A stretch of DNA of 64,000 nucleotides from Octopus bimaculoides (GCF_001194135.2 NC_068984.1:81852389-81916388), one strand, 5' to 3'; counted from the first letter of the stretch, positions 732 to 62,435 are shown. Numbers and translations are program-made. Notes: a model not told the origin generated them from the sequence alone.

Positions 732-2668
732 TAAGGCGGTGAGCTGACAGAAACGTTAGTACGCCGATTTTGAAGTTGTGTTGGTGATTTGGTTGAGAGA
801 GAGCGTTGTGTTGAGAGCGATGAGTTTGATTTTTGAGACTGCTGTTGAAATTTGTTGAAATTATTTATTGTTGAATTTGTATCTTACTCATTGTTGGGCA
901 TGGAAGCGGGCAGCTATGCTGCGGCAGCAGGCAAAAGCCTGTCAGCTGACATGCTGCAATTGAAAGAAATACAAATAGATGTAAAGAATTTTTTAAAATT
1001 CAACGAACTGTTGTGGAAGGAGGGAGATTGCCTTCGATTGACACCGCCAAATGACGCAGTGCAAAGGTCCGAAAGGAGGAAAATTGTGTATAGAACGCTG
1101 AACGTGGAGACCAAGAGAGTCGAAGTGGCTGAAATAGAAGAGTGTCTACGAGGGGTCAGGAAAGTGACCACATTTTATGCAAGAGACAGGAAATGCAGCA
1201 CGGTGGAGGTGCGCTTCGTGAGCGAGGAGGAAGCAAAAACGCATTCCACTGTGCCTTTGAGAACAGCAAAGTGGGCACTCTTACCGACCTACTGCGAGAA
1301 GCGTGTCGCAAGAATGAGGATAGGGAGAGTGCCACCGGAGATAGATGAGGCATGGCTGGTGGCAGCCATCCTCTACAACTGCGAGGACGAAGTGGAGGTG
1401 TTAAAAGCAGAAAAGTCGAGAGAAATCAACTGATGGGGTTATAGCCTGGAAGTTATGATCCACATAACCCTGCCAGACCTACATAAGATTGTGGAAGAGT
1501 TGGAGCTCCCCGACTGAGAGTCGTGGTGGAAGGGAGACCACCGATATGTTATAACTGCAGAAGTTGAGGACACATGCAAGCAAAGTGTCCGCATAAACAA
1601 GTGCAGATAGAGGTAGAAGAAGCAGTGGTGGTAGAAACAGAGGTGGAGGAGGAGCCAACGGCAGATAGAAAAAGAACGAGAGTAGAATCGCTACTAAAAA
1701 GTCCAAAGAAAAGAAAGGAGGAGAAAGAGAAAAAGAAAAAAATAGCAGAAGAAAAAGAAAATACGGAGAATCAAACCCAAGAACCAGAGCCAACAACAAG
1801 TAGAGAAAGACAAGAGCTAAAGAGGCGAAAATTGAGGAGTGGAAGGAAAGAGTAAGAAGGCAATTAGAATATGTATCTCAAACAGGGCAGCCTGCTGGAC
1901 GGAATTTAAGAATGTTGGTGTTTTACGACAAGGACATGGAAATAGAGAAGAAAATAACTAGAGTGAAAAACTTAGTAAGAATTAGATTGGACCACGACAT
2001 GTTTGAGCATAATGAAAGAGCGGTGTTATTGGAGAGAATAGAGAGGCTTACAGAATTATTTGGATACAGTATGAGACCATCTGGGTTATATGTCCAATAC
2101 GACAATTTACCTAGCGTTATCGGATTGGATGAACTCACAGAACATATAACAGACAAAAGATAAGACGGATACAAACATGTAAAATGGAACTGCGAGCTTT
2201 AGGGGACTCGTAAGACATTGCATCTTTTCATTTGTTTATAATTTCATTTCGTATTTCATCATTCGTTTTATGTACCCCACGTTTTGTGTTGTCTGTCTTT
2301 TGTAATGTCCCCTCTTTCTCTTCCGCCGAGGTCGACTTTGCCTTTCATCCTTTCGGGGTCGATAAATTAAGTACCAGTTACGCACTGGGGGTCGATGTAA
2401 TCGACTTAATCCCTTTGTCTGTCCTTGTTTGTCCCCTCTATGTTTAGCCCCTTGTGGGCAATAAAGAAATAAGAAACGTTAGCACGCGGGCGAAATGCTT
2501 AGCGGTATTTCGTCTGCCGCTACGTTCTGAGTTCAAATTCCGCCGAGGTCAACTTTGCCTTTCATCCTTTCGGGGTCGGTAAACTAAGTACCAGTTGCGT
2601 TCTGGGGTCGATCTAATCGACTGGCCCCCGCCCCAAAAATTTCGGGCATTGTACCTAGAGTAGAAAAG
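732..2668 (+). mobile_element. Family A SINE split by an ORF1-only retroelement
   Basis: Head 732-766, remainder 2472-2668; host TSD AATTCTAGA(C/T)TTCAC at 717-731 and 2669-2683. Confidence 0.85.
767..2471 (+). mobile_element. Non-autonomous Tx1/L1-like ORF1-only retroelement, copy 1 (decayed ~420-codon ORF, 900-2163)
   Basis: SYAAA N-terminus, VEVRFVSEEEA (RRM-like), VVVEGRPPICYNCRS*GHMQAKC knuckle, K/E-rich linker, C-terminal domain. No EN or RT. ~17-bp TSD AGAAACGTTAG(T/C)ACGC(C)G at 749-766 and 2472-2488; AATAAA at the 3' end. Confidence 0.8.
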
Positions 2669-7809: not shown

Positions 7810-9679
7810 CTTTTCTGCTCTAGGCACAAGACCCGAAATTTTAGGGGCGGGGGAGACAGTCGATTAGATTGACCTCAGTGCGCAACTGGTACTTAATTTA
7901 TCGAGCCCGAAAGGAGGAAAGGCAAAGTCGACCTCGGCGGAATTTGAACTCAGAACATAAAGACAGACGAAATACCGATTTCTTTATTAGGCATAAGGCC
8001 CTAAACATAGATGGGGTCACCTCAAGGACAGACAAGACCACAGTGGGGACAAAAAACAAAACGAATGTAAATGAAATGAAAGTTATATAAAAATGAAAAT
8101 GGACGCATGGGCCCCACTCCTATGCAGTACCATTTGAACCGTTATATGTATTATCTACAATTGTTCTTTTTTTCCTTTAATTTCATACTTTTTTTGTCTT
8201 TAGTAGAACTTCATTAGTGGTTCGATATCTTATAAATCTACCACTGGTGGCAACTCTTTAAATTCCACCTCCACTTCTGGCGAGTCAACGTTATCTCCAC
8301 ACATCTCTTTCAATTTTCTGTAGTTTTCCTCTTCGATCAATATTGCCTTCATATCCTCCGCGTAGACATATGAAGGCACCTTTACTCTTACTATTGAATG
8401 TAACTTGATTATTTTTTCCTCTGTTTCAACATTTTTTGGGTAGTTACATAATATCACACTCCTTCTCCTCCTCGTATCTTCTTTCCTTTCTCTTGGATTT
8501 TTGGTTCTCTCTTTTCTTCCTCCATATCACCTTCATACAGTTGGGTTTCCGATATTTTCTCCACTGGTAACTCCACTTTCTTTTTCCTTCCTACAGCCCT
8601 CCTTCACAGTTTCTTTTCTCACCTCTTCTCTCTTCTTTTTCTGCTTCTCAGACGGAGAACTCATTCCTCCGCTCCTCCTTCTTTTCTTTTTAACCAGAGT
8701 GAATCCCTTCTCCGCTTCTTTTTCTATTGCCTTGTCCTGTACTACCTGGTCCACACTCTCATGTCTCTCCTCCTGTTCTGTTTGTGGCTTTCTTTGGATG
8801 CACCATGCCTTCATGTGGCCACTTTCTCCACATGTGAAACACACTGGCGGCCTACCCTCCACAGTAACTCACATCTTCTGGCAGCACAATCTCAACCACC
8901 ACACTGTTCAAGTCCTCTGTTGTTGCCTGAATCGTTAATTCGATCCCATATCCCCACTAATCTACCTTCTGGGTCTTTGTAGCCTTCAGTATCTTCCCGT
9001 CTTTCATATTATATGTTATGGCTGTCATCAGTCATTCTTCTTTCAATTCGGGTGGCACCTTACCCACTCGCACCTTGGCCACAGGTTTGCTGCAGTACGA
9101 AGTCAAGAGCACCCATTCGTCTGTCCTTATTGCCTCTGTGGAGTGCTTTATTGCTTCCTCCTCCGTTGTGAAGCGCACCTCCACAGTGGCATATTTTCTC
9201 CCTCTCGTAATGTATGTTGGGAATCTTTTTATATTTTTAAAACATTCCTCTATGGCCTCTATTGGTGCTATTTCTATCTTTCTCGTGGCTGCCTTCATGG
9301 TTTTAAATATAACCGTTCTTTTTGTCACGTTGGCCGATAACTCTTCAGGCGGTGTCAGCTTCAAAATGTTTCCTTCCTTTGTGATTAATTTCTCACTCTC
9401 CTTCATCTTTCTAGGCTCCACTTTTATCTCGCGGAGCTCCAACTCTCGCGTGTCTACTCCTTTGCTCGTTGCGGCCGCATAACTTGGGCCTGCCTCCGGT
9501 GTCTTCTCCATTTTCCCCACAATGGGAAACAAAACAACAATTAACGAATCAACAACGGCAACAATTCAATCAACAATGGTAACAATTCAATAAACAGTTC
9601 AACATAAACTCACGTATTAATTCACAGAGACCGCTAAGCATTTCGCCCGGCGTGCTAACGTTTCTACCACGTCGCCGGC
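7810..9679 (-). mobile_element. Family A SINE split by an ORF1-only retroelement
   Basis: Head 9679-9630, remainder 7977-7810; 20-bp host TSD TTTAGTGGTT(C/T)TACTATATC at 7790-7809 and 9680-9699. Confidence 0.85.
7978..9629 (-). mobile_element. Non-autonomous Tx1/L1-like ORF1-only retroelement, copy 2 (decayed ~425-codon ORF, 9511-8230)
   Basis: PSYAAA, TVEVRFTTEEEA, VTVEGRPPVCFTCGESGHMKAWC CCHC knuckle, K/E linker, C-terminal domain homologous to copy 1. Ends in AATAAAGAAAT; CGGT repeated at both junctions (7974-7977, 9630-9633). Confidence 0.82.
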
Positions 9680-9976
9680 TTTAGTGGTTTTACTATATCA
9701 CTGAAGTATCGTCCTGGCTTTGTTAAAGAGACTTAACTCTTAACTGTAAGGTTTAACTTTAACAATTTACTGCTCCAAACAGTAACGAGGTTGTGGAGTT
9801 GACAAGTAATTCATTGTCGTTCAGTGTCGTGTTTAATTCCATTCCTCACCCTACCGAGATAAATACTGCCAGTATCCAAAACTTTCAGTGTTTCTCATGG
9901 TGTGGAACAGCTCCCTGAGCGTGGAAGCCCCCTGGCAGGAGGGAAGGGTTGTGAGACTCGTAAAGAAGGAGGACAA

Positions 9977-10065
9977 GTACGAAGGCAAGAGCACGCATTC
10001 GTCTGTCCTTATTGTCTCTGTGGAGTGCTTTATTACTTCCTCCTCCGTTGTGAAGCGCACCTCCA
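9977..10065 (-). mobile_element. 89-bp fragment of the same ORF1 family
   Basis: 4 mismatches versus 9095-9183. Confidence 0.85.
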
Positions 10066-11713: not shown

Positions 11714-44221
<32,508 letters not shown>

Positions 44222-44960
44222 ATGAGTAAATAAAAAAAGCAGTAGTCCCTGATCAAAAATGGTTCCTAAACCTCTGCAGCACATCTCATCATAAGAGCAG
44301 TCTTTCTCTACTCAATGAGAATTTTTTTTTTGTTTTGATTTTTGAGTTTTTGTCTCTATTTTTTTTTTTTTTTTCAGAAAGTGTGTTTAAAACTAAAAAA
44401 AAAAAATTTTAAAAGCAAACACATAAAAACAGCAATGATGAAAATATTTAAATACTCCTTCCACAAATCCCTTTTTTTTTTCTTCTTTTATTTATCTATT
44501 TATTCTTTAAATGGACTGGCAGTAATTTAAATGAGATTTGCTTTTGGCAAAGTTGTGAAACCTGAAGTTTTGCACTTTCCTTAAGTTTTTTTTGTTTTTA
44601 TACTTATTATTTAATGATGATTATTTAATCTATTAAATTTACATTTATTGAGGATTAATCTATAATTGGACAAAGTCAGAAAATATAAACATATATTTAT
44701 TAGTTGGCTTAAGCAGTTTGTTTGTGAGCCTTTGCCTTGCTCTACTGTTGCCTTACATTCCAATGATTTTCGGTAAAACTCTACTTTCGGCTTGCTTTCT
44801 TTGTTTTTTTTTCTTTTTCCATCCTCTAGTAATAATACATTCCGTTAAAGTGTAGTTATACATTAGCTTCATATATTTTCCAGCATGGAAAAAACAGACA
44901 TAAAATGAATGAATGAACAAATATATATATAAAGCTAGAATGTAACTACACATATATATG

Positions 44961-44991
<31 letters not shown>

Positions 44992-45267
44992 GTTCATGTC
45001 ACACTAAGAAGCAGTGCACAGTATAGGAATTAGTGTCTCCATAAGTGGAATGTAAACCAGCCAATTTGTATTGGCATCAAGTCATATAAGTTGTAATAAT
45101 GAAATTAAATCTAATTTTGAAATGTTTTAACTGAAGAAGGTTTACCTAATGGATGCATTTCCTATTATGTATTATGCAAACCTGAAATGTATGTATTAAA
45201 TGATTTCAGAATGTCACTATTACGTTTGACTTCATTATCATAACACACACACACACATATATATATA

Positions 45268-45326
<59 letters not shown>

Positions 45327-47640
45327 CTAAAGTAATAAGTGTAACTACACTCATATNNNNNNNNNNNNNNNNNNNNNNNNNNNNNNNNNNNNNNNNNNNN
45401 NNNNNNNNNNNNNNNNNNNNNNNNNNNNNNNNNNNNNNNNNNNNNNNNNNNNNNNNNNNNNNNNNNNNNNNNNNNNNNNNNNNNTATATATATATATATA
45501 TATATTGCTTGGTTTACAGCAGTTTGTGGAAATATGATTATTGCTTCAGTGAGTAAATTTCCATACAAATATTTAATATTGCTATTTGATTGAGCTGGGT
45601 CTTTTTATATAGATATTATTTACCCATTCTGATCATGTATACAATAAATAAAAGTGACATGGCAATGTTACTAAACCATCTTGGTTTATTAGCATACAAA
45701 CACATCTACGATGCTTTAAACCATTATAACAGCAATCTGAATTTATCTTAGTATACAACCCAGCTTTATCGTGCTTATATAGTTTCCATGTGACGCTTAA
45801 CTGGAATTAGCGAAAGTAGCTGGCCATAAAATTCTTGCTTCAACATTAATCATGTGAAATCTGAATTTTTCTGAAGCAACCAACAATCCTTTGCTCATAG
45901 AGATGGAAAATATTCAATTCTGATTTCATGTACAATTTCTGCTAACAGAAAATTTAATATTTCAATGTCTATATTTGTTGAGTCAACCAACTGTTTAGGT
46001 CTTGAAAATAATGCCATGAAGGCTGTAATATTTTAATTGAATTTGGTTATTGTGGTATTACAGTTATGTTTTCTTTGTTTTGCTTTTTGTTTTTTTCTTA
46101 TGTTACCCCAGTGTTATAAAAATCTTAATTCTTTGTTTGCAATTTTCGCACTTATATCAAAATTTGCTGATTACTATCCCTGCTTTTGTTTTAGATTATT
46201 TGTTCTAACAGCTACTTCAAGTGCTCTTCAAAAAATAGTTCTTGTCATATTTTTAGAGATAATTATTCAACTAAAAATCAAGGAGAAAACACATAATTTA
46301 CTATAAATTGCAAGTTTTGTTTATTCTTTTCTAAAATATTCAAATATTAAAGAAATAACAAAAAAACTTTCCATTTCAAAACTATTTTTTTAATTAAAAT
46401 TTCATGAAGCTTTGAAATTTGCATGTATTAATTTACTTTTTCTTTCCTCTTTTCTTACTCCTCCTTTCTATCTCTTCCTTATATGCCATGGTTGATTTTG
46501 GGAGCAGTGTTTCAGCTGTAAGAAATCTTCAAGGTTTTACTGTTATTATGGTGTGGGTTGTACACATGAAGGTCCACTTAATTCAAGCAAACATTAAAAT
46601 ACCAGTGATGAGATAAAATGATTATATGCTTTGTGTATTTAGAAGTAATTGGAAGTTGAAATGCAGGAAGAATTAACCCAGATTTTATCTTCTCAGAGAT
46701 AAAAGGAATAAATTAATTCAAGTTTTAGCCAAATTTCACTGACATAAATATTTCTTGCTCAACAGTTTACATCATTTGTTCACATTGGTTTACTGCAAAC
46801 TGACAGATTTTGAATTAGGTAAAGAACTTGTGTTATCTGATGGATTATGTCAGTCACTTCAGCAATCATACATGAGGTTGTATTTTAAAGTTGTATTAAT
46901 GGATCTGCATATTTTCTATGCTTAATGGAAAATATTAAGCCATCAGCTATTGATCATTTGTGTGATTTCTTTTCCTTGCTCTGAAAACTAGAAAGCAATA
47001 AATAAAATAAATTAGATTATAAGTATCAGTACAAATTTCAAATCCCCCATATCAGTTAAGAAACTTCTGGTATAATATCTGTTTCAAGTTTTCAGTCTGT
47101 ATTGTATTTGTGATGCTTTACAGAATATATTCTCTTTAACCAAAAATAAATGCCATATTAGTGTTCTTAGTTTAATTACCATTCTACTATAAATCAATAT
47201 TTACCACTCAGATGATAACCTTTTATGCATCTGCATTAAAATCAGTTACTACACTCACACTAACCTGCATAGGTTTCCTTAATCTGTCTCTATTTATCAC
47301 TGAAGATGGGTTCATTGTTAATGAACATCAATAGTATTTAAGTTGATTGTAGAACAATTTTAGCAGACACAAATTTACGGAGATTTGTCATCTGTTATAA
47401 AAATTGTATTATACTTGGTTGTGAGAATCACCTACCTATATTTGTATTTTCTTTTATAATTCTGTATTAACAGAACTTGGGGGGAAATATAGGTATATGT
47501 GAGCATCTATGCACATAAGTAGTATGTGTGTCTATGCCTTTAGAATTTATAACTGACATGATAAAGAAAAAAAAGGTAATAACAAAGATACTTGATCTCA
47601 AAAATCACAAACCTCTTTGTTATGCTTCAATAAATGTTAT
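44222..47640 (+). other. Probable SNX4 3' UTR with several AATAAA signals
   Basis: AATAAA near 44227, 45647, 46706, 47000, 47145 and 47628; AU-rich, TE-poor, CpG-poor. The end point is uncertain. Confidence 0.4.
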
Positions 47641-48949
47641 TTGTCAGATATTTTCTTTGTGTTTGTTTATTTCTTATCTTAACATCCATTGCCAATGTAA
47701 TTTAACTATATATATATATATATATATTTGTCAAAGAGGACAACAAATGCTAAGGCAAGACAAACATCTCAAGTTATATATGTTATTATTAAAAAATTTT
47801 AAGTCAGATCTGTTCAATCTCAAGCACAGATTAAAATTTTTTTTTTAACGAAACAGTTTGAAACTTCGGATACTGGTTGAATGTGTCACATAGAACATGG
47901 TTTACTTTTATCATTTTTGACAAAATTCTGTATTTTAGTAGTTATTTCATGTTAAAGTTATCGTATTTGGGTAATTTTAACCAATCAATGATGTATATTC
48001 AGCTGAAGAAAGTTACTGCTGCTGTTTGCGAACAACAACTTACAACTCATTATTTTAACAAAATTATTACTGAGACAGTCCAACGATGTAGCCTGTATGT
48101 GGTTGCACGACCTGCTAGAAAAAGTAGCCAAACTTTTTTATATACAGAATAGAAAAACCTTTATCCTGTGATATACAGGAAGAAAGACGGAATGGTTACA
48201 GTTGAAAAGTCTTGGATCATAACTGTTCAATCAGATCCAACTCAGGACTAAACAACAGGTGACGAAGGGAACGAGACGAGGCAACGAGAGAGCCTTTACC
48301 TGGTTGCTCGAGTTGCTAGAAAGAGCAATCAAATCTTCCGGACAAAAAGAAAAATAAATTTCCGTCTTCAAGAAAAAAAAAACTAAAGCAAATTTATATT
48401 ATTTTATAATGTTCACTTAGGGAATTCATTACTTCTAGAAAAGAATAAGACAAAATGGTCATGGCTGGAACGTCTTTTTACACAGATCCATTACAATCAG
48501 AGCTATCCTGTGGTTAAAAAAATATTCTTCACTGAATGATGAAGCCGCTAAAGTTAAAGAAAAGTTGAAAGACTAAAAGATAGCAAATATCCATATTCCA
48601 AATATTGGGATTCCCTTGACCAGTGTAATTTATACAGATTTTCGTATGAAATAAATAGAAAATGTTATGGGAACTTTGTACATATTATGGCTAATATCCA
48701 GTGTTGTATGAGAGTAGTTTCATGGATCTTGTCAATCTAAGTCACAGATTTTTTAATTACTTTTTTTTAACAAAACAGTTTGAAACTTCAGATACTGGTT
48801 GAATGTGTCAGAGGTTTTTCTATTCTGTATATAAAAAAGTTTGGCTACTTTTTCTAGCAGGTCATGCACTCAAATCAACCCTGATACAGCAAACCTATCA
48901 TCAAAGACATTCCAGCCTTCAGCAAACCATCTTTTTAGGGATAATCTAG

Positions 48950-49667: not shown

Positions 49668-51460
49668 NNNNNNNNNNNNNNNNNNNNNNNNNNNNNNNNN
49701 NNNNNNNNNNNNNNNNNNNNNNNNNNNNNNNNNNNNNNNNNNNNNNNNNNNNNNNNNNNNNNNNNNNGATTGCTGGGAAACAATCAGGACCAGCAGTTGA
49801 GTTTGCGTCCACCTCATCTATAGCTAACAGTATATCTTCTTCGCTAATATCGATGTATTCCATCGTAACTGCCACTTTTGAACTGGTAATTCAGTACCTC
49901 ACTGATTCTGGTTGGACTATCTATGAGGGAGCCATCCTTTTGGAAGAAGGTGTCCTATCTTGCAGCGTGCTGATGCTGTTTCTTTGGCGTAATGAAAGAA
50001 GGCCTTTGGGTTTGACTTAACGTTTTTTATAACCCAGGCTTCTTTGTCTGCTCTTTCCCTCATATAGGACTGTTGCAGGCTTTTTTCAATTTCCATCAGT
50101 GTTGTTTTTAGGCAGGACCTTTCGTTACTTTTGGGATGTTGGTTGAGGCGATTTGCAACCTTCGCCCGTCGTCTCATGAGGATCATCCTCTCCCTTGGAA
50201 TTTTCTTCCTATTTGTTGTGACCTTGTGCTCTGGAGCATATTTCTGGCATATGGCTTGCACAACAGATATGAAATATTCTAGTTTCATGCCAATGTCTGG
50301 TGTGGAGAGTCATTTCGGACAGTCCTGTCTGCGGATCTCTTTTTGGATCTGCTTTGTGGAAGTACAGATTGGAGAGATTTCGGGTGCTTCCTTTAGGCTG
50401 TATGTCTCTAGCTACCTTTGGCCCAAACATAGACAGGTCTATTATGTTGTGATCCGAGACTAATGTCGGCTTCACTTTCACATCATGAATGATGTCTATA
50501 TTGTTCGTGAAGCAGAGATCCAAAATGTTATTCGCCCTAGTTGGTCTGAGTACAACTTGCTCTATGAATAGGGCATTGGTGAGGTTAAGCAAGGACTCCA
50601 CCTGTGCTTGTTTGCAATGAGTCATTCCTGAGAGCAGGAGTCCTTCGGGCCATTTGACGTTGAGGAAGTAGCTATCACCCATAAGAAATATGCCCACGTG
50701 GTGTTCCAGTTTCATAAGGATTTCTTTAATTCTTGTGAAGCAATCTTCAAACTTGCCTATGTGGTTTGGAGCATCCGGTGGGCAATACGTATTGCATATG
50801 ACTATAGTGTATTGTCTTATGTATACAATTGGAGTGTCACATACCGAATTTGAGTATGACAGTAAGACCTGGAGTGTGAGGTCGTCACGGATGTATACAG
50901 CAACTCCACCATGGCTCCTTTCCTTTCTGTCTGTTCGCAGTAGGGCATATTTTGGTACGTGTATTTCTTCATCCTCTACATCAGGGCTGAGGTGAGTGTC
51001 CACGAGTGCTATTGATAGGGCTTGATTGCATGCAGCAAGGTCTCGTAGGAAAAAATTTTTGCTTTTGTTATGATGCAACAGGACCCCAATATTTAGTAAA
51101 AATATTGGCGTGACGTCTGTGCAGCCGTTAGGGGAGGCCATCCTGTGTCTGTTGACTGTGGTGGTTTTGCGCAGTGGCGGACAAGATTCCTTGTTTGCGC
51201 TTGGTGTAGCCAGATCAGCTGCTGCACAATCTTTTGTGCCATGCACAAAAGAGACTCTTGCTCAGCTGCTGCCTTGTGCATAACCTCCGAAGAGCGCACT
51301 TCTTTTCTATAGTTTTTCCTTGGGAACGATTTTTGTCTTTTCTCATGGAAGCTTTTCTCCTTCAGGCCCCTGTAGTTTTGGCGGGGTCTCGGGTGAGCAA
51401 ACCGGCAGTTTTTGCCGTCTTCCCCATGCCAACAGTGACAATTAGTTGGTTGTCAATATA
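49440..51460 (-). mobile_element. CR1/L2-type LINE: ORF1 end, APE endonuclease, RT start
   Basis: ORF 50209-51246 (DTHL, RTDR...GGVAVY, MGDS, PTRANNILDLCFTN, SDHN); DEVDANSTAGPDCFPA at 49770-49875. Confidence 0.88.
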
Positions 51461-52774: not shown

Positions 52775-55074
52775 CCACTTCAGAATATATGTACAATGTC
52801 ACCTATACATAATTAACTAATTAATTATTTAGTTTTGATAACTTATTCTACTGCGTTAGAAAGAACACGCATATTATCAGGTTTCAAAGTATGTATCTAT
52901 CGCTAATTGAATGACATCTACGCTAAAAACAGTTATTCCTTCAGTCAGATGCAATTTTCAAGACATTTTTGATATGATGGGAACTAAGTCAATGATAAAA
53001 TATATGACTTTATTTCTGGTACCGCAGATACAATTTTCAAGACTCTTTTAATAAGATGGAAACTATTTCAATAATAAAAAATATAACTTCTAGTACTAAT
53101 TCAATGACTAAAAATATCGACTTACCATCTTTTACCTCAGTCTCAACAACTTTGTACGAGTATATCGGAACATCTGCAAGATAATATATTATAATTTTCT
53201 TATAATGTTTAATATTTCTTACGTAAATGTGGAAGCTGGGATTTGTCACGGTATGACAATGAAGGAAATTTAACAGTCATGATTTATCTCAACGTTATGA
53301 CAATCGCATATTTATGAAAATTTTATTACTGTAAATTGTTACATGGTTGCCGTAAAAACGAAAGTGTTTATCTGGTTTTGATGAAACCAATTATGAATAT
53401 GAGGATTTTCAGTGTCACCTTTTAATTAATCTTTTATATTATGTATCTGTTCAAATGTGATACACAGATTGCTATTTCAAACTAATACTGCTTCCGTTAC
53501 ACATAACGAATTTTATATTCACGTTGTCGGTCAACGTCGACATCAGTGGTTTTTACAATCATTAATTTGTCTTATCAGTAACGGCAGAGTTTGCTTTAGC
53601 ATGTGATTATCAGTGGATACTTCTACTGACCAGACCCAAAGAGGTACTGATATATCGTCTGGTACTGGTATATCGTCTAGTACTGATATATTTTTGTGAT
53701 TTTTAACACCGTACATCTATAAGAAATACTATCTCAGAATGCATATGCTTATATCCATTTTCATACAAAATTTACTCAACTGCTTCTGCTGTAATATAGT
53801 GTTTTGCGTCAAACATCATGAAATAGATATATTACTGTGGTAATAATTACTGTTATTATTACTACTCACAGTTATTTCCATCAACTCGCCAGTCAGTCTA
53901 AAATGAGGTTTTGGAATGATATTTAAACTGGGCTGATTCCTGATCAGCAAAGTTCACGACTAAAATAACTAATGACGGATATCATACCTTCGTTCTTAGA
54001 AGAGTAAATCTTATTTACGGCCAATCATTTCCAGTCTTCTGTATTCAGCAATTTCGTCAGTTCGATAACCAGAATCACTACATTTGAACTTTTGTAGGAT
54101 TTCTATTCCTGATCAGGTTTCACAATTTTCACGCAAGACTTGTGAAAAGAAGTCTACATGAAGGATATCTTTCTAGGATACGATAATGACTAATAAATGA
54201 ATTCGATCTTTAATTATATTACTGTCTTCGCTGTCGGCAGTAGTCGTCCAGCTATGTAACTTGTCTTCTAAAGAAAACAGTTTTGAGTCACAATGTTAAA
54301 ATGATAACTAATGAAGATGAGAATATCTAAATATCAACTTACTACTTGGTTGTTCAAGAACACGTGGTTGTTCAAGAGCACGTTTTGCATATTTCTGATT
54401 ATCTATAATCGAAAGAAATATGATTTTTTAGAAAAGAAAATGACATATCACTTAGCTAATAATTATTAATTTTATTGTTTCTGTTTAGGATAGGAGATGG
54501 TTAAATCTATGAAGCTGCGGGGTTATTTAATTACATTAATATATTAAGCATATCAACAGTTATGGATGGTAGAAATGGTAAATCACTGGATTTTATGCCG
54601 AAATGCTAGAATGAATATCAATTTACACCTTACTACTTTACGTGTACCTTTTGTGTATTTTCGAACATCTACAGTTCGAAACAAATATTGTAAGACATTA
54701 AAAAAAAAAACATAGCTAATTATGTTTCTGTTTAGGATAATAAATGGTTGAATCTGGAAAATCATAGGTTATTTAATTGCATTAACATTAGGCATCCTTT
54801 CAAGGGCAATGGGTGGTAAAATTGGTAAAACGCTGTAATTATTCAACTTTCGCTCCTCAACAGTTTCATTTCATAATCATCTAGCCGGATTCGAAGTACG
54901 TATTCGTTAGCTGGTGTGTGACCTTTTTACAAGAGGCATTTCTGTCTCAAAATAGGCGCAAATTACAAGTTGTTGTTTAATGTGATAGAAAATGTTTTAA
55001 TGATTGGTAAATACATATTGACTTACTCTTTGTTGCTGTAGTCGTGAAAGTTTTATTCAATACGGTTTTAGGAG
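52775..55074 (-). CDS. Candidate micro-exon gene, product unknown (Thr/Lys-rich); possibly a pseudogene
   Basis: AG/GT-bounded exons 55074-55027 (48 nt), 54668-54634 (35), 54402- or 54394-54343 (60/52), 54267-54223 (45), 53897-53870 (28), 53173-53126 (48), 52802-52775 (28). Donors gtaagt x3, gtaagg, gtaata, gtgagt, gtgagc; mostly phase 1-1. No homology recognised. Confidence 0.45.
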
Positions 55075-55377: not shown

Positions 55378-55517
55378 CTGTGGGATAAGCCCGTTGTAGT
55401 TCGGGTTTCCGCCGCTAGAAACCATTTGATGCAACCCATGGGCATCAGTCTGCCGACCGACGTCGTCAAGTAAAGTCGTACTGACACGTGGTGCATCTTT
55501 GTTTTGCAGTGCTTCTC
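55378..55517 (+). mobile_element. 5' fragment of the same mariner family as 19847
   Basis: Aligns to 19880-20020 with CpGs intact. Confidence 0.8.
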
Positions 55518-55559
55518 ACAGGGGTGGGTGGGGGAACAGATCGAATAAACTATATTGTT

Positions 55560-55995
55560 GAAACCAACAGAACTTGCAGAATCGCTAGCACGTTAGTGGT
55601 AGTTCCTCATTCTAATGTTCTGAGTTCAAATTCCACAGAGGTCGACTTTGTTTTTCATCCTTTCGAGGTCGATAAAATACGTAACAGTTGCGTACTTGAG
55701 TCCATATAATCGACTAGACCCTCTCCCCACAAATTTTCAAGATTTGTACCCATAGTAGAAAGAATTAGTAAATCTAAGTTCAAGGCGGCAAGCTGGTGGA
55801 GTCATTACTGCATCGGACAAAATGCTTAGTGGTAATTCTTCTTGCTTTACGTTCTAAGTTCAAATCTCGCCGAGGTCGACTTTGTCTTTTACCTTTTCGG
55901 GGTCGATAAATAAGTACTACTTTTACACACACAAGGGTTGATGTAATTGACTCGTCCTTTTTGCCAAATTTCAGGTTTTGTGTCTATAGCAGAGA
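55560..55995 (+). mobile_element. Two head-to-tail family A SINEs
   Basis: Two heads (~55565, ~55780), each with GTTCAAAT and GAGGTCGACTTTG; another copy at 56990-57200. Confidence 0.8.
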
Positions 55996-58900
55996 GAATT
56001 ATTCAATCTAGGTGCATTGAAAACATCAACTAATAAAGAGATTGCAACACCATAATGTTACAAACACTATCTACATGAAGCAAACAGTTTCGAACTACAT
56101 ACTTGAAAACAAATAATTACAGTCTTCACACTACACATATTATTTTTTTTTTTAATACAACAACATCGTCAATTGCAACAACTTTGTGATGTAAAACACT
56201 AATTAACGTTTCGAAGCAAAGCTAAACTTGATTGGTTTGGTAAGATTCAGAACACTCAAAAATATCATATAGTATACGTTCAACTGAAGCTTTGCCCTAC
56301 AAATCACAGAATCATTTGTAACTATATTATATTGTAAATTATATTTTCTTGACCATAGAAAAAAGTAAACATTGCACCAGTAGCAGATTACACAGCTCCA
56401 CATTGCAACTGTTTTTTGACACCAATCTACTCAAGCACTCACACCCTCACAACAGGCGTAAGAAGGATGTTGAGTAAAAGAAAAGAAGAAGAATTGTAGA
56501 AAGACCTATTTAAGCAAACTCATCATTATACACAAAGATCTTGTAAATCAAAAGATCATACTTCCTCCCAAATGTAAAAAGTAATATAAACTTACTGTTT
56601 TTATCGGAATTTATCTCTGATTCTGAAAACACGAAAAAAGAAAAAGCAAAAATATATTTTTAAAATATTTATTATTTAGAAGAATTCATACAGATATCCA
56701 TGGCAGTCTAACGCAAGCTATCTTTACGAACAGTATTTAGTTCCAGACTTATATGCGTGTTTTTTAAGCTTCTGGTTTTAACTACATTCACTCTGCCTTA
56801 TGTAATGTAGATGTGTCTGTGTCTTAAGATATGTGACGAAGACTGTTTAATATTGGTTTCATAAGAGGCCAGGTATATATATGATGAAAATATTCCACTG
56901 AATACTGTGTCAAGCTATTATCTCGGATCACACAATTTATTGTAAAACTAGAAACGATTAAATATGTAAAATAGTGTTACACGAACAGGGTGTTGAGCTG
57001 GTAGACTCGCTAGCACGCCGGGCGAAATCCTTAGCAGCATTTTTGTTCGTCTTAACGTTCTGAGTTCAAATTCCACCGAGGTCGACTTTGTCTTTTAACC
57101 CTTCGGGGATCGATAAAAAAGAAAGTATCAGATGAACACTGGAGTTGATGTAACCGATTTCCTCCTCCCCCAAAATTTCTGGCCTTATACCAAAACCAGT
57201 AGAGCGTCGCGCAAGTTTCCGAGTAGATATTTTCGTTTGGACATAGCATATTCTAACATACAATTTTGTTTTAGATTACACTGTACGAGCTAAGATCCAT
57301 GTCTCTTTACGTTTCTCCAGACGTTTATCTACATAAAAGCCTTTTGCCGATACAGAAGACTATGGACCCGCGAGCACACACACGTGCACATTCTTGTATT
57401 TTACAAATATCTTACTCTTCTTTTATTCTCTTACTCGTTTCAGTCATTTGACTGCGGCCATGCTGTTGCACCGTCTTAAAAGGTTTTGTCAAGTAAATCA
57501 ACCACCGTAATTATTTTAAGCCTTATTCTGTCAGTTCTTGTGTCGAACCGCTAATTTCGGCAACGTAAACAAATCAACACCAATTGTCAGGCAGTGGGGG
57601 AACAAGTATATGCAGAAAGATGCAACCCCACCCCATCACCACCACCACCACCCACACACGCACATGCATACACACACACGCACACACACATACACATACA
57701 TACATACATAAGTTTACGGTGGTTTATTCCCCCAATTCACTACTTCAAAAAGTTTCGATGTTTCTTTAAAAATCAGGAAAGAACACAACAATCAATACAT
57801 ACAAAACAAATATCTTACCATTTGAAAAGTATAACTGCTTGATCAATCTATGATATTCTGAAAATTGTAAAAAGTAATTAGTACTTTTTAGAAAATACTT
57901 CATTTAATTTAGACATTACTGCAAAAAAGACACCTAAAAACATTACTATATTCAATTGTATAAAAAGACATTCAGATCTTCAACTCTCGATAGAGAGCTA
58001 GAATATCAAATGTTTGAAAGTACATATCACATAGAGATGTAAGAGTTTTGCAAGATCACAATGCTGAGTTCAGAACACCAAAATAGGTCTTACAGATAGA
58101 AATGAAAGGATGTTTAATAATCAGACGTGTTACAGACTCCACAACAAATTGAAGACTGCAAATAGTATATCGTCGATGCATCAATCACATCATTCTGAAA
58201 GAGCTTGCACCCACTCCTCTGATATTTCGAATATTAAAAAAAAATAATAATAAAAAAACAGAACAAGTATTCTCAAACGCAAGAAGCAAGTGTAGCGTCA
58301 ATTTTTACATCAGTCCCTGATTACAACAATGAATTATGCCATCTGAGCAAAACTTGAAAGTTAAGTCACTTGGGCATGAACTCAGCAGTGAGTCGGTTGT
58401 AATTACAGGCGTCCAACTTTTCGGCTACAAAAGTACCTAGGGACACATGCTGCATGATAAATGAAAGTGAATCAAGAAATTTTGATTAATAAAAATTACT
58501 TCTGTTGTGAGGAAGAAACAATCTGTCATGTTATGGATGGATTCTGGTAAAAAAAAAAAAAAAAAAAAAGAAGACATGGGATATAATCCTAGAATTAAAA
58601 TTTAAAATAAAAATGATTAGAAATAGAATATAGTTGGTTTTGTCATTGTGATCTTTAAACTCTATAGCGATAACTCAAAGTTTGGTTTGGCCTCGTAAAC
58701 ATCATTGGAGTAATAAAGTCTCGCCAAGATACAAGAGATTTTATAAACACCAAGGTTAATAAACACTAAGTCGCATAATAATGAGTTTGTTCTCCCCTTA
58801 GAACAGGTGCAATTTTAATTATTAAATTTTGATTCTCGATATCAAATATATTAGCGCACATTTTACAATTTGTTTTACGTGCAGCGTGCATATCTTTTAT

Positions 58901-60483
58901 TTCCAGAATCATTCTTTTTAAGTTATCACAACACTCAGTCTTCATTCTTTAAATACAGTATAAAGTAGAAGCTGCATAACATGATTATCGATAATGTTAA
59001 CAACTGGTTATTGTTATCAGAATTAGTAGCTCTTAATCTCATTGTTTGCTTAGTGTTACCAGCTGTTATTGTTATGCAAAGACTTCATCTCAAAGTAATA
59101 AAAATACACAGCTTCTACGATATTCTATACTAGCAGATATAGTCGACGTTGCTCGGGATTAAAATAGCATAGTTTTTCATTGTTTTACTTGTTTCAGTCA
59201 TGTGACTGCAGCCATGCTGGAGCACTGTATTTAGTCGAACAAATCAACACACGAACTCACATAATGAATCTTGCAAACCCAATCCCAATAGGTATTGCGA
59301 ATAGCTGCCTGACTGAATAAAAAACCGTGAATAATTCCTAATTATGTAATATAAATATATATCGCAGAAGTAAATAAAAATAAAATATTGTTGTACATAC
59401 TATGATTCTCTGCCAACCATCTCTTCAGTTTGCCAATTCCTTAGATTGTAAATTTAGAAATAAATTNNNNNNNNNNNNNNNNNNNNNNNNNNNNNNNNNN
59501 NNNNNNNNNNNNNNNNNNNNNNNNNNNNNNNNNNNNNNNNNNNNNNNNNNNNNNNNNNNNNNNNNNNNNNNNNNNNNNNNNNNNNNNNNNNNNNNNNNNN
59601 NNNNNNNNNNNNNNNNNNNNNNNNNNNNNNNNNNNNNNNNNNNNNNNNNNNNNNNNNNNNNNNGTTATTATCTAGTGTAACAATTTAAAATGATAATAAC
59701 AGAATCAATAATATAGGCGATAGATAGATTATTAGAATATTAATTCAATATTTTAACTCTCTTATTGGTAACGAAATATATAATTTGGAATAAAAATACC
59801 AAAATTCCCCAGTTTTATTTTTTAATATGCAATTACTCTGAAACAGATATCTGTCAGTATTTTTACAGTATTCTCCAGTAATTTCAACATGTAAATCATA
59901 ACATCTACAAGTATACTTTGGAGAACTGAAAATGCAGATGTGCTTCATGAAGTCACAGATTGGATTATAACCCTATCTACATATTGTATATGTGTGTGTA
60001 CAGACAACGTTGTACAGGTAGCATGTTATACACATGTTATAAATCTTTCCTGTTTTCGTTGTAACAAATCCAGACAAACAGATATCCACAATCTCATAAT
60101 AACAACTGGCACTCCGTCGGTTACGATAAGTGTTCCAGTTGATCCGATCAACGGAACAGCCTGCTCAAGAAATTAATGTGCAAGGGGCTGAGCACTGTAC
60201 AGACACGTGTGTTCCTAACGTAGTTTTCAAAGAGATTCAGCATGACACAGAATGTGACAAGGCTGGTCCTTTGAAATACAGGTATAACTCATTTTTACCA
60301 GCTGAGTAAACTGAAGCAATGTGAAGTAATGTGCGTTGCTCCAGGATACAACGCATCGCCCGGAATCGAACTCACGACTTTACGATCGTGAGTCGAATAC
60401 TCACGTGCCTTCACACAATCTCAGAACAGACATAGACTGGATGTAAGCAAAAAGAAAATAAAACCTATTCTTGAAGAAATAGC

Positions 60484-60945: not shown

Positions 60946-62435
60946 ACATCAATTTTACCATTCTGGAAGGCCGTGTACACCTCATGTCATTGCCTTATTT
61001 CTTTGTCTATTTTATAAAAGACGATTGCAATTAGTAAACCAATGAATTGCTCGTAAATTCTTCTCTACATCTTCTTATTACAACTGAGTATTATACCATC
61101 CTTTGTGAAAGCACATCCAGGTATGTTTGTTTCATATTCTAGGGAAAATATTACCTTACTTGAAAATAAGTGAGGGTTTGTGGCAGGAAAATCATCCAGC
61201 CATAGAAAAATTTGCTTTAATGAGGTTCTCGTCTGACCCACGGAAGCATGGAAAAATAAACAACATCGATGATGATGATAAAAAAAACAACTGTGATTAT
61301 ATATAACCACAAGAATTATAATCTCATTTGATCATGCATATACTTACTATTAGAGTGCATCAACAGATCTAGAACTAGCTGTACCCAGGCTGTTTCAATA
61401 AAACTATTTTTTAAGATACATGTCGTCAAAGCAGAAATTTAGAAAATTTTCCTAAATAAAACTAGGTTAGAGTTAATTAAATGTATGTTAACTAAATATA
61501 TGTTGAGATTAGATATACAGTTGCCTCAAAATGTCTCGTGTCTACAGTAAAACACTAAACTAGAAGCAGGTTAGACACCAGCGACACCTTTCCTGTGTTA
61601 ATAGTAATCAGCCTACTGAGACATCCATTCACACTCTTAAAATAGAAACACACACACGTGCGTTCCCCATACATACACCCCCACCCACCCACACACACAC
61701 ACACACAATCATCTTCTTTAGAATAGTTTTTACAAGTCAGTAAAACATACTTGTAGTAAGCGACTTAATATAAAGATAAACAGAAAAGGATCTACCAGCT
61801 TACTGTTTTCATCGATTTCATGATTTCCCGATGCGTTTTGCTCTGAAAACAAGAAGCCCAATAGATATTTTTTAAAAATATATTGTGTTTATTAGAATTC
61901 ATATGTCCATAATTAAAATTTGTTAATTTTTAGAAATAGGATTAAGTTTCAAATGAAGTAATGTTTCTAAAAGCTACAGATATTGTTTCATCCACTCCAT
62001 CAAGGTATTTAGCCCAAGGACAGTTCCATCCAGTAGGCTTGTAATCGAAAAAATACACGTATTAACCATCTGTCTTTTTTGTGTATAGGACTGCTCTGTC
62101 CAGTGTGTCCCACTTGATATAAGGGTTAGGGTATGATTTGAGATCATTTGGGTGTTATTTCTAGCGTGTTAACCAACCGCGTAAAACTCCCTCGTTGAAT
62201 CGCATTCAATGTCTAGTTTAATGTAAATGTATCTGTGTTCCAAAACTAGGACGAAGTTACGTGCTTAACACCGAGTTCAATAAATCGAGTATTTTTTAGA
62301 TAAAATATTCTACAGAAAATAGTCTCAGCTCATAATAAATATTTCCAGGAATTTTCTGCTCATTTCAGGGCACACACTTTATAGTCAAATTAGTCGCTAG
62401 TATCTAAACCGTTTAATACATAACATGGTCTAGCG

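Follow-up and report, generated by a model that had tools for sequence, protein, structure and literature searches.

LOC128247653 of Octopus bimaculoides is a lineage-restricted minus-strand micro-exon gene that is wrongly annotated in part

LOC128247653 of Octopus bimaculoides is a real micro-exon gene that is encoded on the minus strand, restricted to its lineage and in part wrongly annotated. The gene lies in a 64,000-nucleotide stretch of eukaryotic DNA that is AT-rich, repeat-rich and gapped (NC_068984.1:81852389-81916388; hereafter the window, with positions counted from its first letter). We consider it probable that this is a young, lineage-restricted coding gene, near-entirely composed of phase-1, frame-neutral micro-exons of 27-60 nt with introns of 0.6-2.4 kb. 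A minus-strand micro-exon gene had been proposed here from the sequence alone (the original prediction, covering 52775-55074), and this central claim is borne out by a spliced RNA contig with GT..AG joints.

The evidence for expression and splicing is one assembled contig of one run, X35. This RNA contig (3045 nt, depth 727.4) joins three of the seven segments of the original prediction to four further micro-exons upstream of them on the minus strand, and the six joints concerned all read CT..AC on the plus strand, which corresponds to GT..AG on the minus strand. The seven window exons are collinear with the contig in genomic order and orientation and show zero mismatches. In the direction of transcription these exons, each of phase 1-1, are 61804-61842 (39 nt, QNASGNHEIDEN; contig record 2125-2163, flanked by ttttcag and gtaagc), 59401-59439 (39 nt, RIGKLKRWLAENH; joint 57857>59401, CT..AC, depth 727.4), 57819-57857 (39 nt, KYHRLIKQLYFSN; joints 56622>57819 and 57857>59401), 56596-56622 (27 nt, ESEINSDKN; likewise in the contig), 55027-55074 (48 nt, TPKTVLNKTFTTTATK, the first segment of the original prediction; record 1972-2019, joint 54402>55027), 54343-54402 (60 nt, NNQKYAKRALEQPRVLEQPS; record 1912-1971, holding an 18-nt tandem duplication) and 53126-53173 (48 nt, NVPIYSYKVVETEVKD; record 1864-1911, joint 53173>54343). 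Record 1864-2163 is contiguous, and thus there is no additional exon between 53126 and 61842. The intervening introns are long when compared to the exons, with lengths of 624, 1169, 1196, 1521, 1543 and 2364 nt. The same seven exons and joints are used by the NCBI model XP_052823599.1, which is independent of the contig; exon 61804-61842 is exon 3 of this RefSeq model (P0001), whose two 5' exons lie past the window end at ~64695-65125.

The exon lengths and the reading frame both speak for coding capacity. All eight known internal exons (39, 39, 39, 39, 27, 48, 60 and 48 nt, including exon 2 beyond the window) have lengths divisible by three and share phase 1. In the 300 joined nucleotides of the seven window exons one frame is open, and any open frame was obtained in only 86 of 100,000 letter shuffles (p ~9e-4). 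Together with the frame-preserving indels described below, the open frame and the symmetric exons speak, indirectly, for LOC128247653 being translated.

The seven segments of the original prediction were all found at their positions with AG/GT borders, although this border pattern carries no weight by itself, because it is not above chance in the region: AG..GT-bounded open segments of 27-60 nt number 175 on the minus and 149 on the plus strand there, with ~225 per 2.3 kb window-wide, and ~4 per 2.3 kb are still expected when a GTAAG donor is required. The decision thus falls to the spliced RNA that the prediction had itself named as its check. Segments 55074-55027, 54402-54343 and 53173-53126 are spliced in the X35 contig as proposed, across minus-strand GT..AG joints, whilst the other four are without RNA support. 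Two of these, of 35 and 45 nt, are skipped by the contig. The 35-nt segment (54634-54668, minus strand) is a pseudo-exon, a degenerate paralogue of the 60-nt exon in the upstream duplicate unit, and as its length is not a multiple of three its inclusion would shift the frame; the 45-nt segment (54223-54267, minus strand, DKLHSWTTTADSED) is symmetric and open with a weak GTAATA donor. The 28-nt segment at 53897-53870 is also skipped by the contig and lies inside a dispersed repeat copy (53836-54084) with a DNA depth of 10-30x single copy, to which many contigs map at ~85% identity and RNA contigs of other loci at 90-95%. The proposed stop exon, encoding GDIVHIF and a stop codon (52780-52802, minus strand), is unused: no X35 contig is found there, and the transcript runs on to exons missing from the assembly, its final exon beginning at 46987.

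This 3' part of the transcript is where the annotation fails. The joined peptide matches only XP_052823599.1 (LOC128247653, "uncharacterized protein", 181 aa, located on CM046604.1), with 98% identity. The RefSeq model consists of the two 5' exons past the window end followed by the seven window exons, and after the 53126 donor it continues with 29 intron codons, GKSIFLVIELVLEVIFFIIEIVSILLKES and a stop (beginning GKSIFLVIELV). The X35 mRNA instead reads CTCTGTCTTCCTCCAGTGATGTTAATACTC downstream of 53126, a sequence with no match of at least 12 bases in the window and not found in the chromosome-scale locus L001 either. Between 53126 and 46987 the contig carries 356 nt of exon sequence (record 1508-1863), for which nothing was found in 42017-64000, and the two contig ends flanking the missing exons are without a match of at least 12 bases; their sole short matches (10-14 nt with at most one mismatch) are scattered far from the gene, and the upstream end matches only outside the window. 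A misplacement of the missing exons within 42017-64000 was therefore rejected. The chromosome-scale assembly at L001 has the same N gaps and also does not contain the missing exons. The RefSeq model reads through the 53126 donor because the next exons (~356 nt) fall in assembly gaps; as X35 splices past this donor, the C-terminus of the RefSeq protein is wrong and the protein probably too short. The expectation that annotation would miss the gene was hence not borne out, in that XP_052823599.1 holds all seven window exons, though with a wrong 3' end. If the frame is kept through the 356 nt, the open reading frame would be closed by a TAA located 21 nt ahead of the last joint and encode ~263 aa.

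The last exon of the micro-exon gene covers 45485-46987 on the minus strand (acceptor tttctag/TTTTCAG; record 5-1508, depth 727) and must be mostly or wholly 3' UTR, since stop codons occur within 45 nt in every frame. The same DNA is occupied on the plus strand by a PX-domain (sorting-nexin-like) gene with a BAR-type C-terminus, which is broadly expressed and whose exons lie at 42601-42759, 43970-44082 and from 44172 onward, with plus-strand GT..AG joints 42759>43970 and 44082>44172. Its last exon with the long 3' UTR spans 44172-47650, as seen in unspliced contigs covering 45485-47650 in runs X44 and X53; the stop codon lies near 44220 and an AATAAA at 47629, with the 3' UTR extending ~3.4 kb to ~47650. 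Run X35 itself also contains a separate contig of 693 nt (46962-47648, depth 98.8) that runs through the acceptor at 46987. Depth in X35 is 727 up to the acceptor at 46987/8 and 99 in the adjoining 46962-47648, a step which indicates that the micro-exon gene ends tail-to-tail inside the sorting-nexin 3' UTR, with an antisense overlap of up to 1.5 kb. The 46962-47648 contig is best explained as sorting-nexin 3' UTR; a micro-exon transcript that has retained its last intron is a conceivable, less favoured alternative. Judged by contig depth, the micro-exon gene is expressed in X35 at roughly 4-7x the level of the sorting-nexin mRNA.

Expression is highly restricted, as had been anticipated. Among the indexed RNA runs of the species the 60-nt exon is present in X35 alone, the source tissue of which is coded, and is absent from every other run including those of a 2015 study; three raw-read RNA runs of the same species gave zero reads on the proposed exons. 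By contrast, 45485-46988 is present in at least 17 other RNA or probable-RNA runs, where it forms part of the unspliced 45485-47650 contig. A broad expression of the micro-exon gene based on 45485-46988 was accordingly rejected, as these other runs show the unspliced plus-strand 3' UTR of the sorting-nexin gene.

The proposal that the gene grows by exon duplication is supported. A ~250-bp exon and intron duplication had been described, and it proved to be a tandem duplication of a ~247-bp unit on the minus strand within 54330-54860 (unit A, 54860-54610; unit B, 54612-54330), with 77% of the columns identical in an alignment that runs from the intron across acceptor and exon into the donor and with direct repeats (D4, D5) at a spacing of 246-247. 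One unit holds the used 60-nt exon and the other the 35-nt pseudo-exon, and the duplication is also present in related species. The 60-nt exon itself contains a tandem repeat of period 18 (54347-54383), which is present in organisms A and B and absent in C, D and E, where a 42-nt in-frame exon is found that encodes NNQKYAKRALEQPS in C and D and NNKKQAKDSLEKPT in E. Further likenesses connect other parts of the gene: the units of exons 61804-61842 and 56596-56622 show kinship (z=9.6), the introns that precede 55027 and 53126 can be aligned in register as far as the acceptor (z=3.4), and gtaagtYRatat is common to three donors. The homologous exon starts that had been noted are real in the case of the 60-nt exon, its pseudo-exon copy and the 53173 exon. 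The likeness of units, introns and donors together with the 18-nt repeat thus supports tandem exon duplication for several exons; a tblastn search for paralogous exons within the window found none. As every exon is symmetric, modules could be gained or lost without breaking the frame: new ones would be added by unequal crossing-over or replication slippage, each micro-exon contributing one short peptide module, and modules could also be lost, as with the 35-nt pseudo-exon. An 18-bp tandem repeat is also seen at 53643-53691 (2.7 copies, 90% matches), in the intron between exons 54343 and 53126.

Besides organism A, only four related species were found to carry DNA of the gene, with a divergence of ~3-9%. 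Organism C, which differs by 2.8% over 900 nt, shows zero substitutions in the 48- and 60-nt exons, whilst exon 53126-53173 carries three substitutions in B, C and D, all of them protein-changing (I>V, S>T and, in a split codon, A>S). In organism E, 8 of the 17 substitutions of the contig fall in the 60-nt exon, which makes up about a quarter of what was aligned, and exon 55027 has five substitutions, four of which are nonsynonymous. Overall, ~16 substitutions were read in three exons and all but one change the protein, with exon divergence being equal to or higher than intron divergence. No stop or frame-breaking change was seen in the exons of the related species, the indels observed being of 18 or 3 nt (the 3-nt insertion of organism C is at 54266, in the 45-nt segment), and no change in a splice dinucleotide is listed for them. 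The donor of the 60-nt exon at 54338 reads GTAACT in organism C when compared to GTAAGT (+5 G>C), and this exon may be spliced less efficiently there. With nearly all changes nonsynonymous and the frame kept, the pattern indicates either weak amino-acid constraint or positive selection, although exon divergence at or above that of introns also fits a non-functional or decaying open reading frame.

The predicted product is without relatives. Neither a word search of 5.8 billion clustered proteins nor a full HMMER scan of 1.84 billion representatives returned a homologue beyond the gene's own RefSeq model, which supports the claim that the gene is lineage-specific. Matches to Pfam were chance matches below threshold (PIG-P, 17.8 bits against a cut-off of 39.3), and AlphaFold2 gave a mean pLDDT of 37.7. 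The RNA-supported peptide of 162 residues has a pI of 9.3. For its micro-exon-encoded part the GRAVY is -1.05; K, N, S, T and E are frequent there, and three N-x-S/T sequons occur. A Thr run is also present. We infer a basic, hydrophilic and probably disordered protein of ~260-290 residues with a high content of Lys, Asn, Ser and Thr. A classical signal peptide is lacking at the annotated N-terminus, where the sole hydrophobic stretch (~11 residues, positions 26-37) follows a charged lead of 25 residues. This N-terminus also appears to be retroelement-derived, and the suggestion of a secreted glycoprotein thus finds no support, even if a structural or secreted-matrix-like role in a specialised tissue is, as a guess, somewhat more likely than an intracellular one.

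The retroelement connection concerns the annotated start. The RefSeq start codon and the first 39 codons match the C-terminal tail of a retroelement open reading frame in an alignment that spans a frameshift (tblastn, E=2e-4, 96-kb database). The tail in the first exon lies at L001 9891-10117 (~65009-65235 in window numbering), with a second copy at L001 6500-7188, 3.4 kb upstream and in opposite orientation; a database word search with the tail found nothing. This one weak local alignment hints at a transposon origin of exon 1, and a first annotated coding exon that stems from a retroelement tail would fit a recent origin of the gene. The transcript has ~843 nt upstream of exon 2, and several upstream ATG open reading frames would be present if these come from one contiguous genomic stretch, i.e. 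one exon.

Mobile sequences are also found elsewhere in the window. SINE-like short repeats of very high copy number occupy parts of the gene introns (55480-55974, 56965-57130 and 57295-57750). Their word depth is as high as 10^5-10^6 in the DNA runs, which come from five species, and all RNA runs contain them in abundance. By reading of their translations, a 345-aa open reading frame at 49917-51246 (minus strand) looks like a LINE endonuclease, two adjacent ones at 23678-24581 (minus strand) resemble reverse transcriptase fragments and one of 122 aa at 21869-22237 (plus strand) resembles the N-terminus of a mariner-type transposase. The open reading frames at 852-1433 (plus strand) and 9032-9532 (minus strand) encode similar proteins with the motifs LKLTPP and VEVRF..EEEA..HST and probably represent the same mobile element in two copies; bins 1-2000 and 8001-10000 are mirror images of one another in GC content and skews.

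The strongest competitor to a coding gene is a tissue-specific, transposon-promoted lncRNA or proto-gene. The open frame would then be accidental or a relic, and the RNA might act, if at all, as a natural antisense to the sorting-nexin 3' UTR. The lack of homologues and of a predicted fold, exons that evolve at least as fast as introns, an annotated start codon inside a retroelement relic and a tail that is antisense to the sorting-nexin 3' UTR over up to 1.5 kb all agree with such an RNA, as would a long 5' leader with several upstream ATG open reading frames, should the sequence upstream of exon 1 be a contiguous genomic stretch. It does not account, however, for eight out of eight internal exons being multiples of three (chance ~1.5e-4), for a single open frame across the exons (p ~9e-4) or for a frame that is kept in three to four related species with indels of 18 and 3 nt, and we thus regard it as unlikely.

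The reading that had accompanied the original prediction goes further than a coding gene, in that it sees a full system of the kind formed by the schistosome micro-exon genes (MEGs), with a secreted and glycosylated product of a gland or surface epithelium that is diversified by combinatorial skipping. MEGs have most of their coding sequence in very short exons that are multiples of three and are separated by longer introns; they are lineage-restricted, fast-evolving and hard for annotation, and their expression is high and local (10.1101/2023.06.21.545858; PMC4350168), with rapid and mostly nonsynonymous change having been reported (PMC4350168). The octopus gene resembles them in its architecture of symmetric micro-exons and long introns, eight known internal exons being very short multiples of three, in its narrow and high expression and in its fast evolution by mostly nonsynonymous change (for MEGs, PMC4350168). 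The three sequons with the Thr run also suit this reading, and the spare symmetric candidate exon 54223-54267 could serve as a cassette. The differences are nonetheless considerable: the exons, at 27-60 nt, lie in the top part of the size range of MEG exons (10.1101/2023.06.21.545858), most MEG exons being ~15 nt, and the gene is a single one of another phylum, without a paralogue in the window. Its sequence resembles neither a MEG nor any other protein, and the two protein searches (5.8 billion clustered proteins, 1.84 billion representatives), with its own protein as sole match, place it neither in a MEG family nor in a line of flatworm origin. Two defining features are likewise not seen, with an annotated N-terminus that lacks a typical signal peptide and appears to be of retroelement derivation and with X35 displaying a single chain of joints and no alternative one (at contig level, where rare forms are dropped), so that the combinatorial skipping of the original prediction is not supported. 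A full MEG-like system is therefore decidedly unlikely. Even less probable is that the gene constitutes an independent cephalopod counterpart of the flatworm MEGs, secreted or surface-bound in a specialised tissue and shaped by tandem-exon growth, skipping and positive selection; if true, fast-evolving interface proteins would have converged on the MEG architecture outside parasites as well.

Duplicated symmetric short exons that encode low-complexity modules are also known from titin PEVK and from vertebrate SCPP and mucin-like genes, which are conserved families with known functions. The likeness to these lies in short frame-neutral exons, low-complexity modules and tandem exon expansion, whereas the octopus modules show hardly any resemblance among their protein sequences and belong to a gene without relatives. 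With orphan genes that carry transposon first exons the octopus gene shares that it is transcribed and spliced, as the X35 contig demonstrates, that no homologue is found outside close congeners, that the first exon aligns to a retroelement and that expression is narrow and evolution fast. Typical young genes, in contrast, possess one or few exons; the precisely phased micro-exons of LOC128247653, no fewer than 10 and probably 15-20, imply that exon duplication has gone on for longer. The searched literature contains no description of cephalopod or mollusc micro-exon genes and nothing under the name of the locus.

That an unstranded de Bruijn contig falsely fused the sorting-nexin 3' UTR with unrelated fragments is barely credible: the RNA data for the chain are at contig level and 1.5 kb of the contig recur in many other runs as unspliced sorting-nexin 3' UTR, but seven exons in genomic order and orientation with zero mismatches, joints that all fall exactly on minus-strand AG/GT, an independent NCBI model with the same seven exons and joints and a depth that falls from 727 to 99 precisely where the acceptor 46987/8 lies stand against it.

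Our findings thus favour a young, lineage-restricted coding gene, and a reading of the sequence alone has here recovered a true micro-exon gene that methods based on homology and open reading frames cannot see. They also correct the RefSeq model, the annotated C-terminus of which is intron sequence. The decayed 247-bp duplicate and the 18-nt duplication that is found only in the two closest species provide a clean and datable example of the growth of a gene exon by exon. If LOC128247653 is not translated, it would represent a well-documented proto-gene; should its product prove secreted or structural in a specialised tissue of the octopus, the gene would add a new case of lineage-specific innovation.
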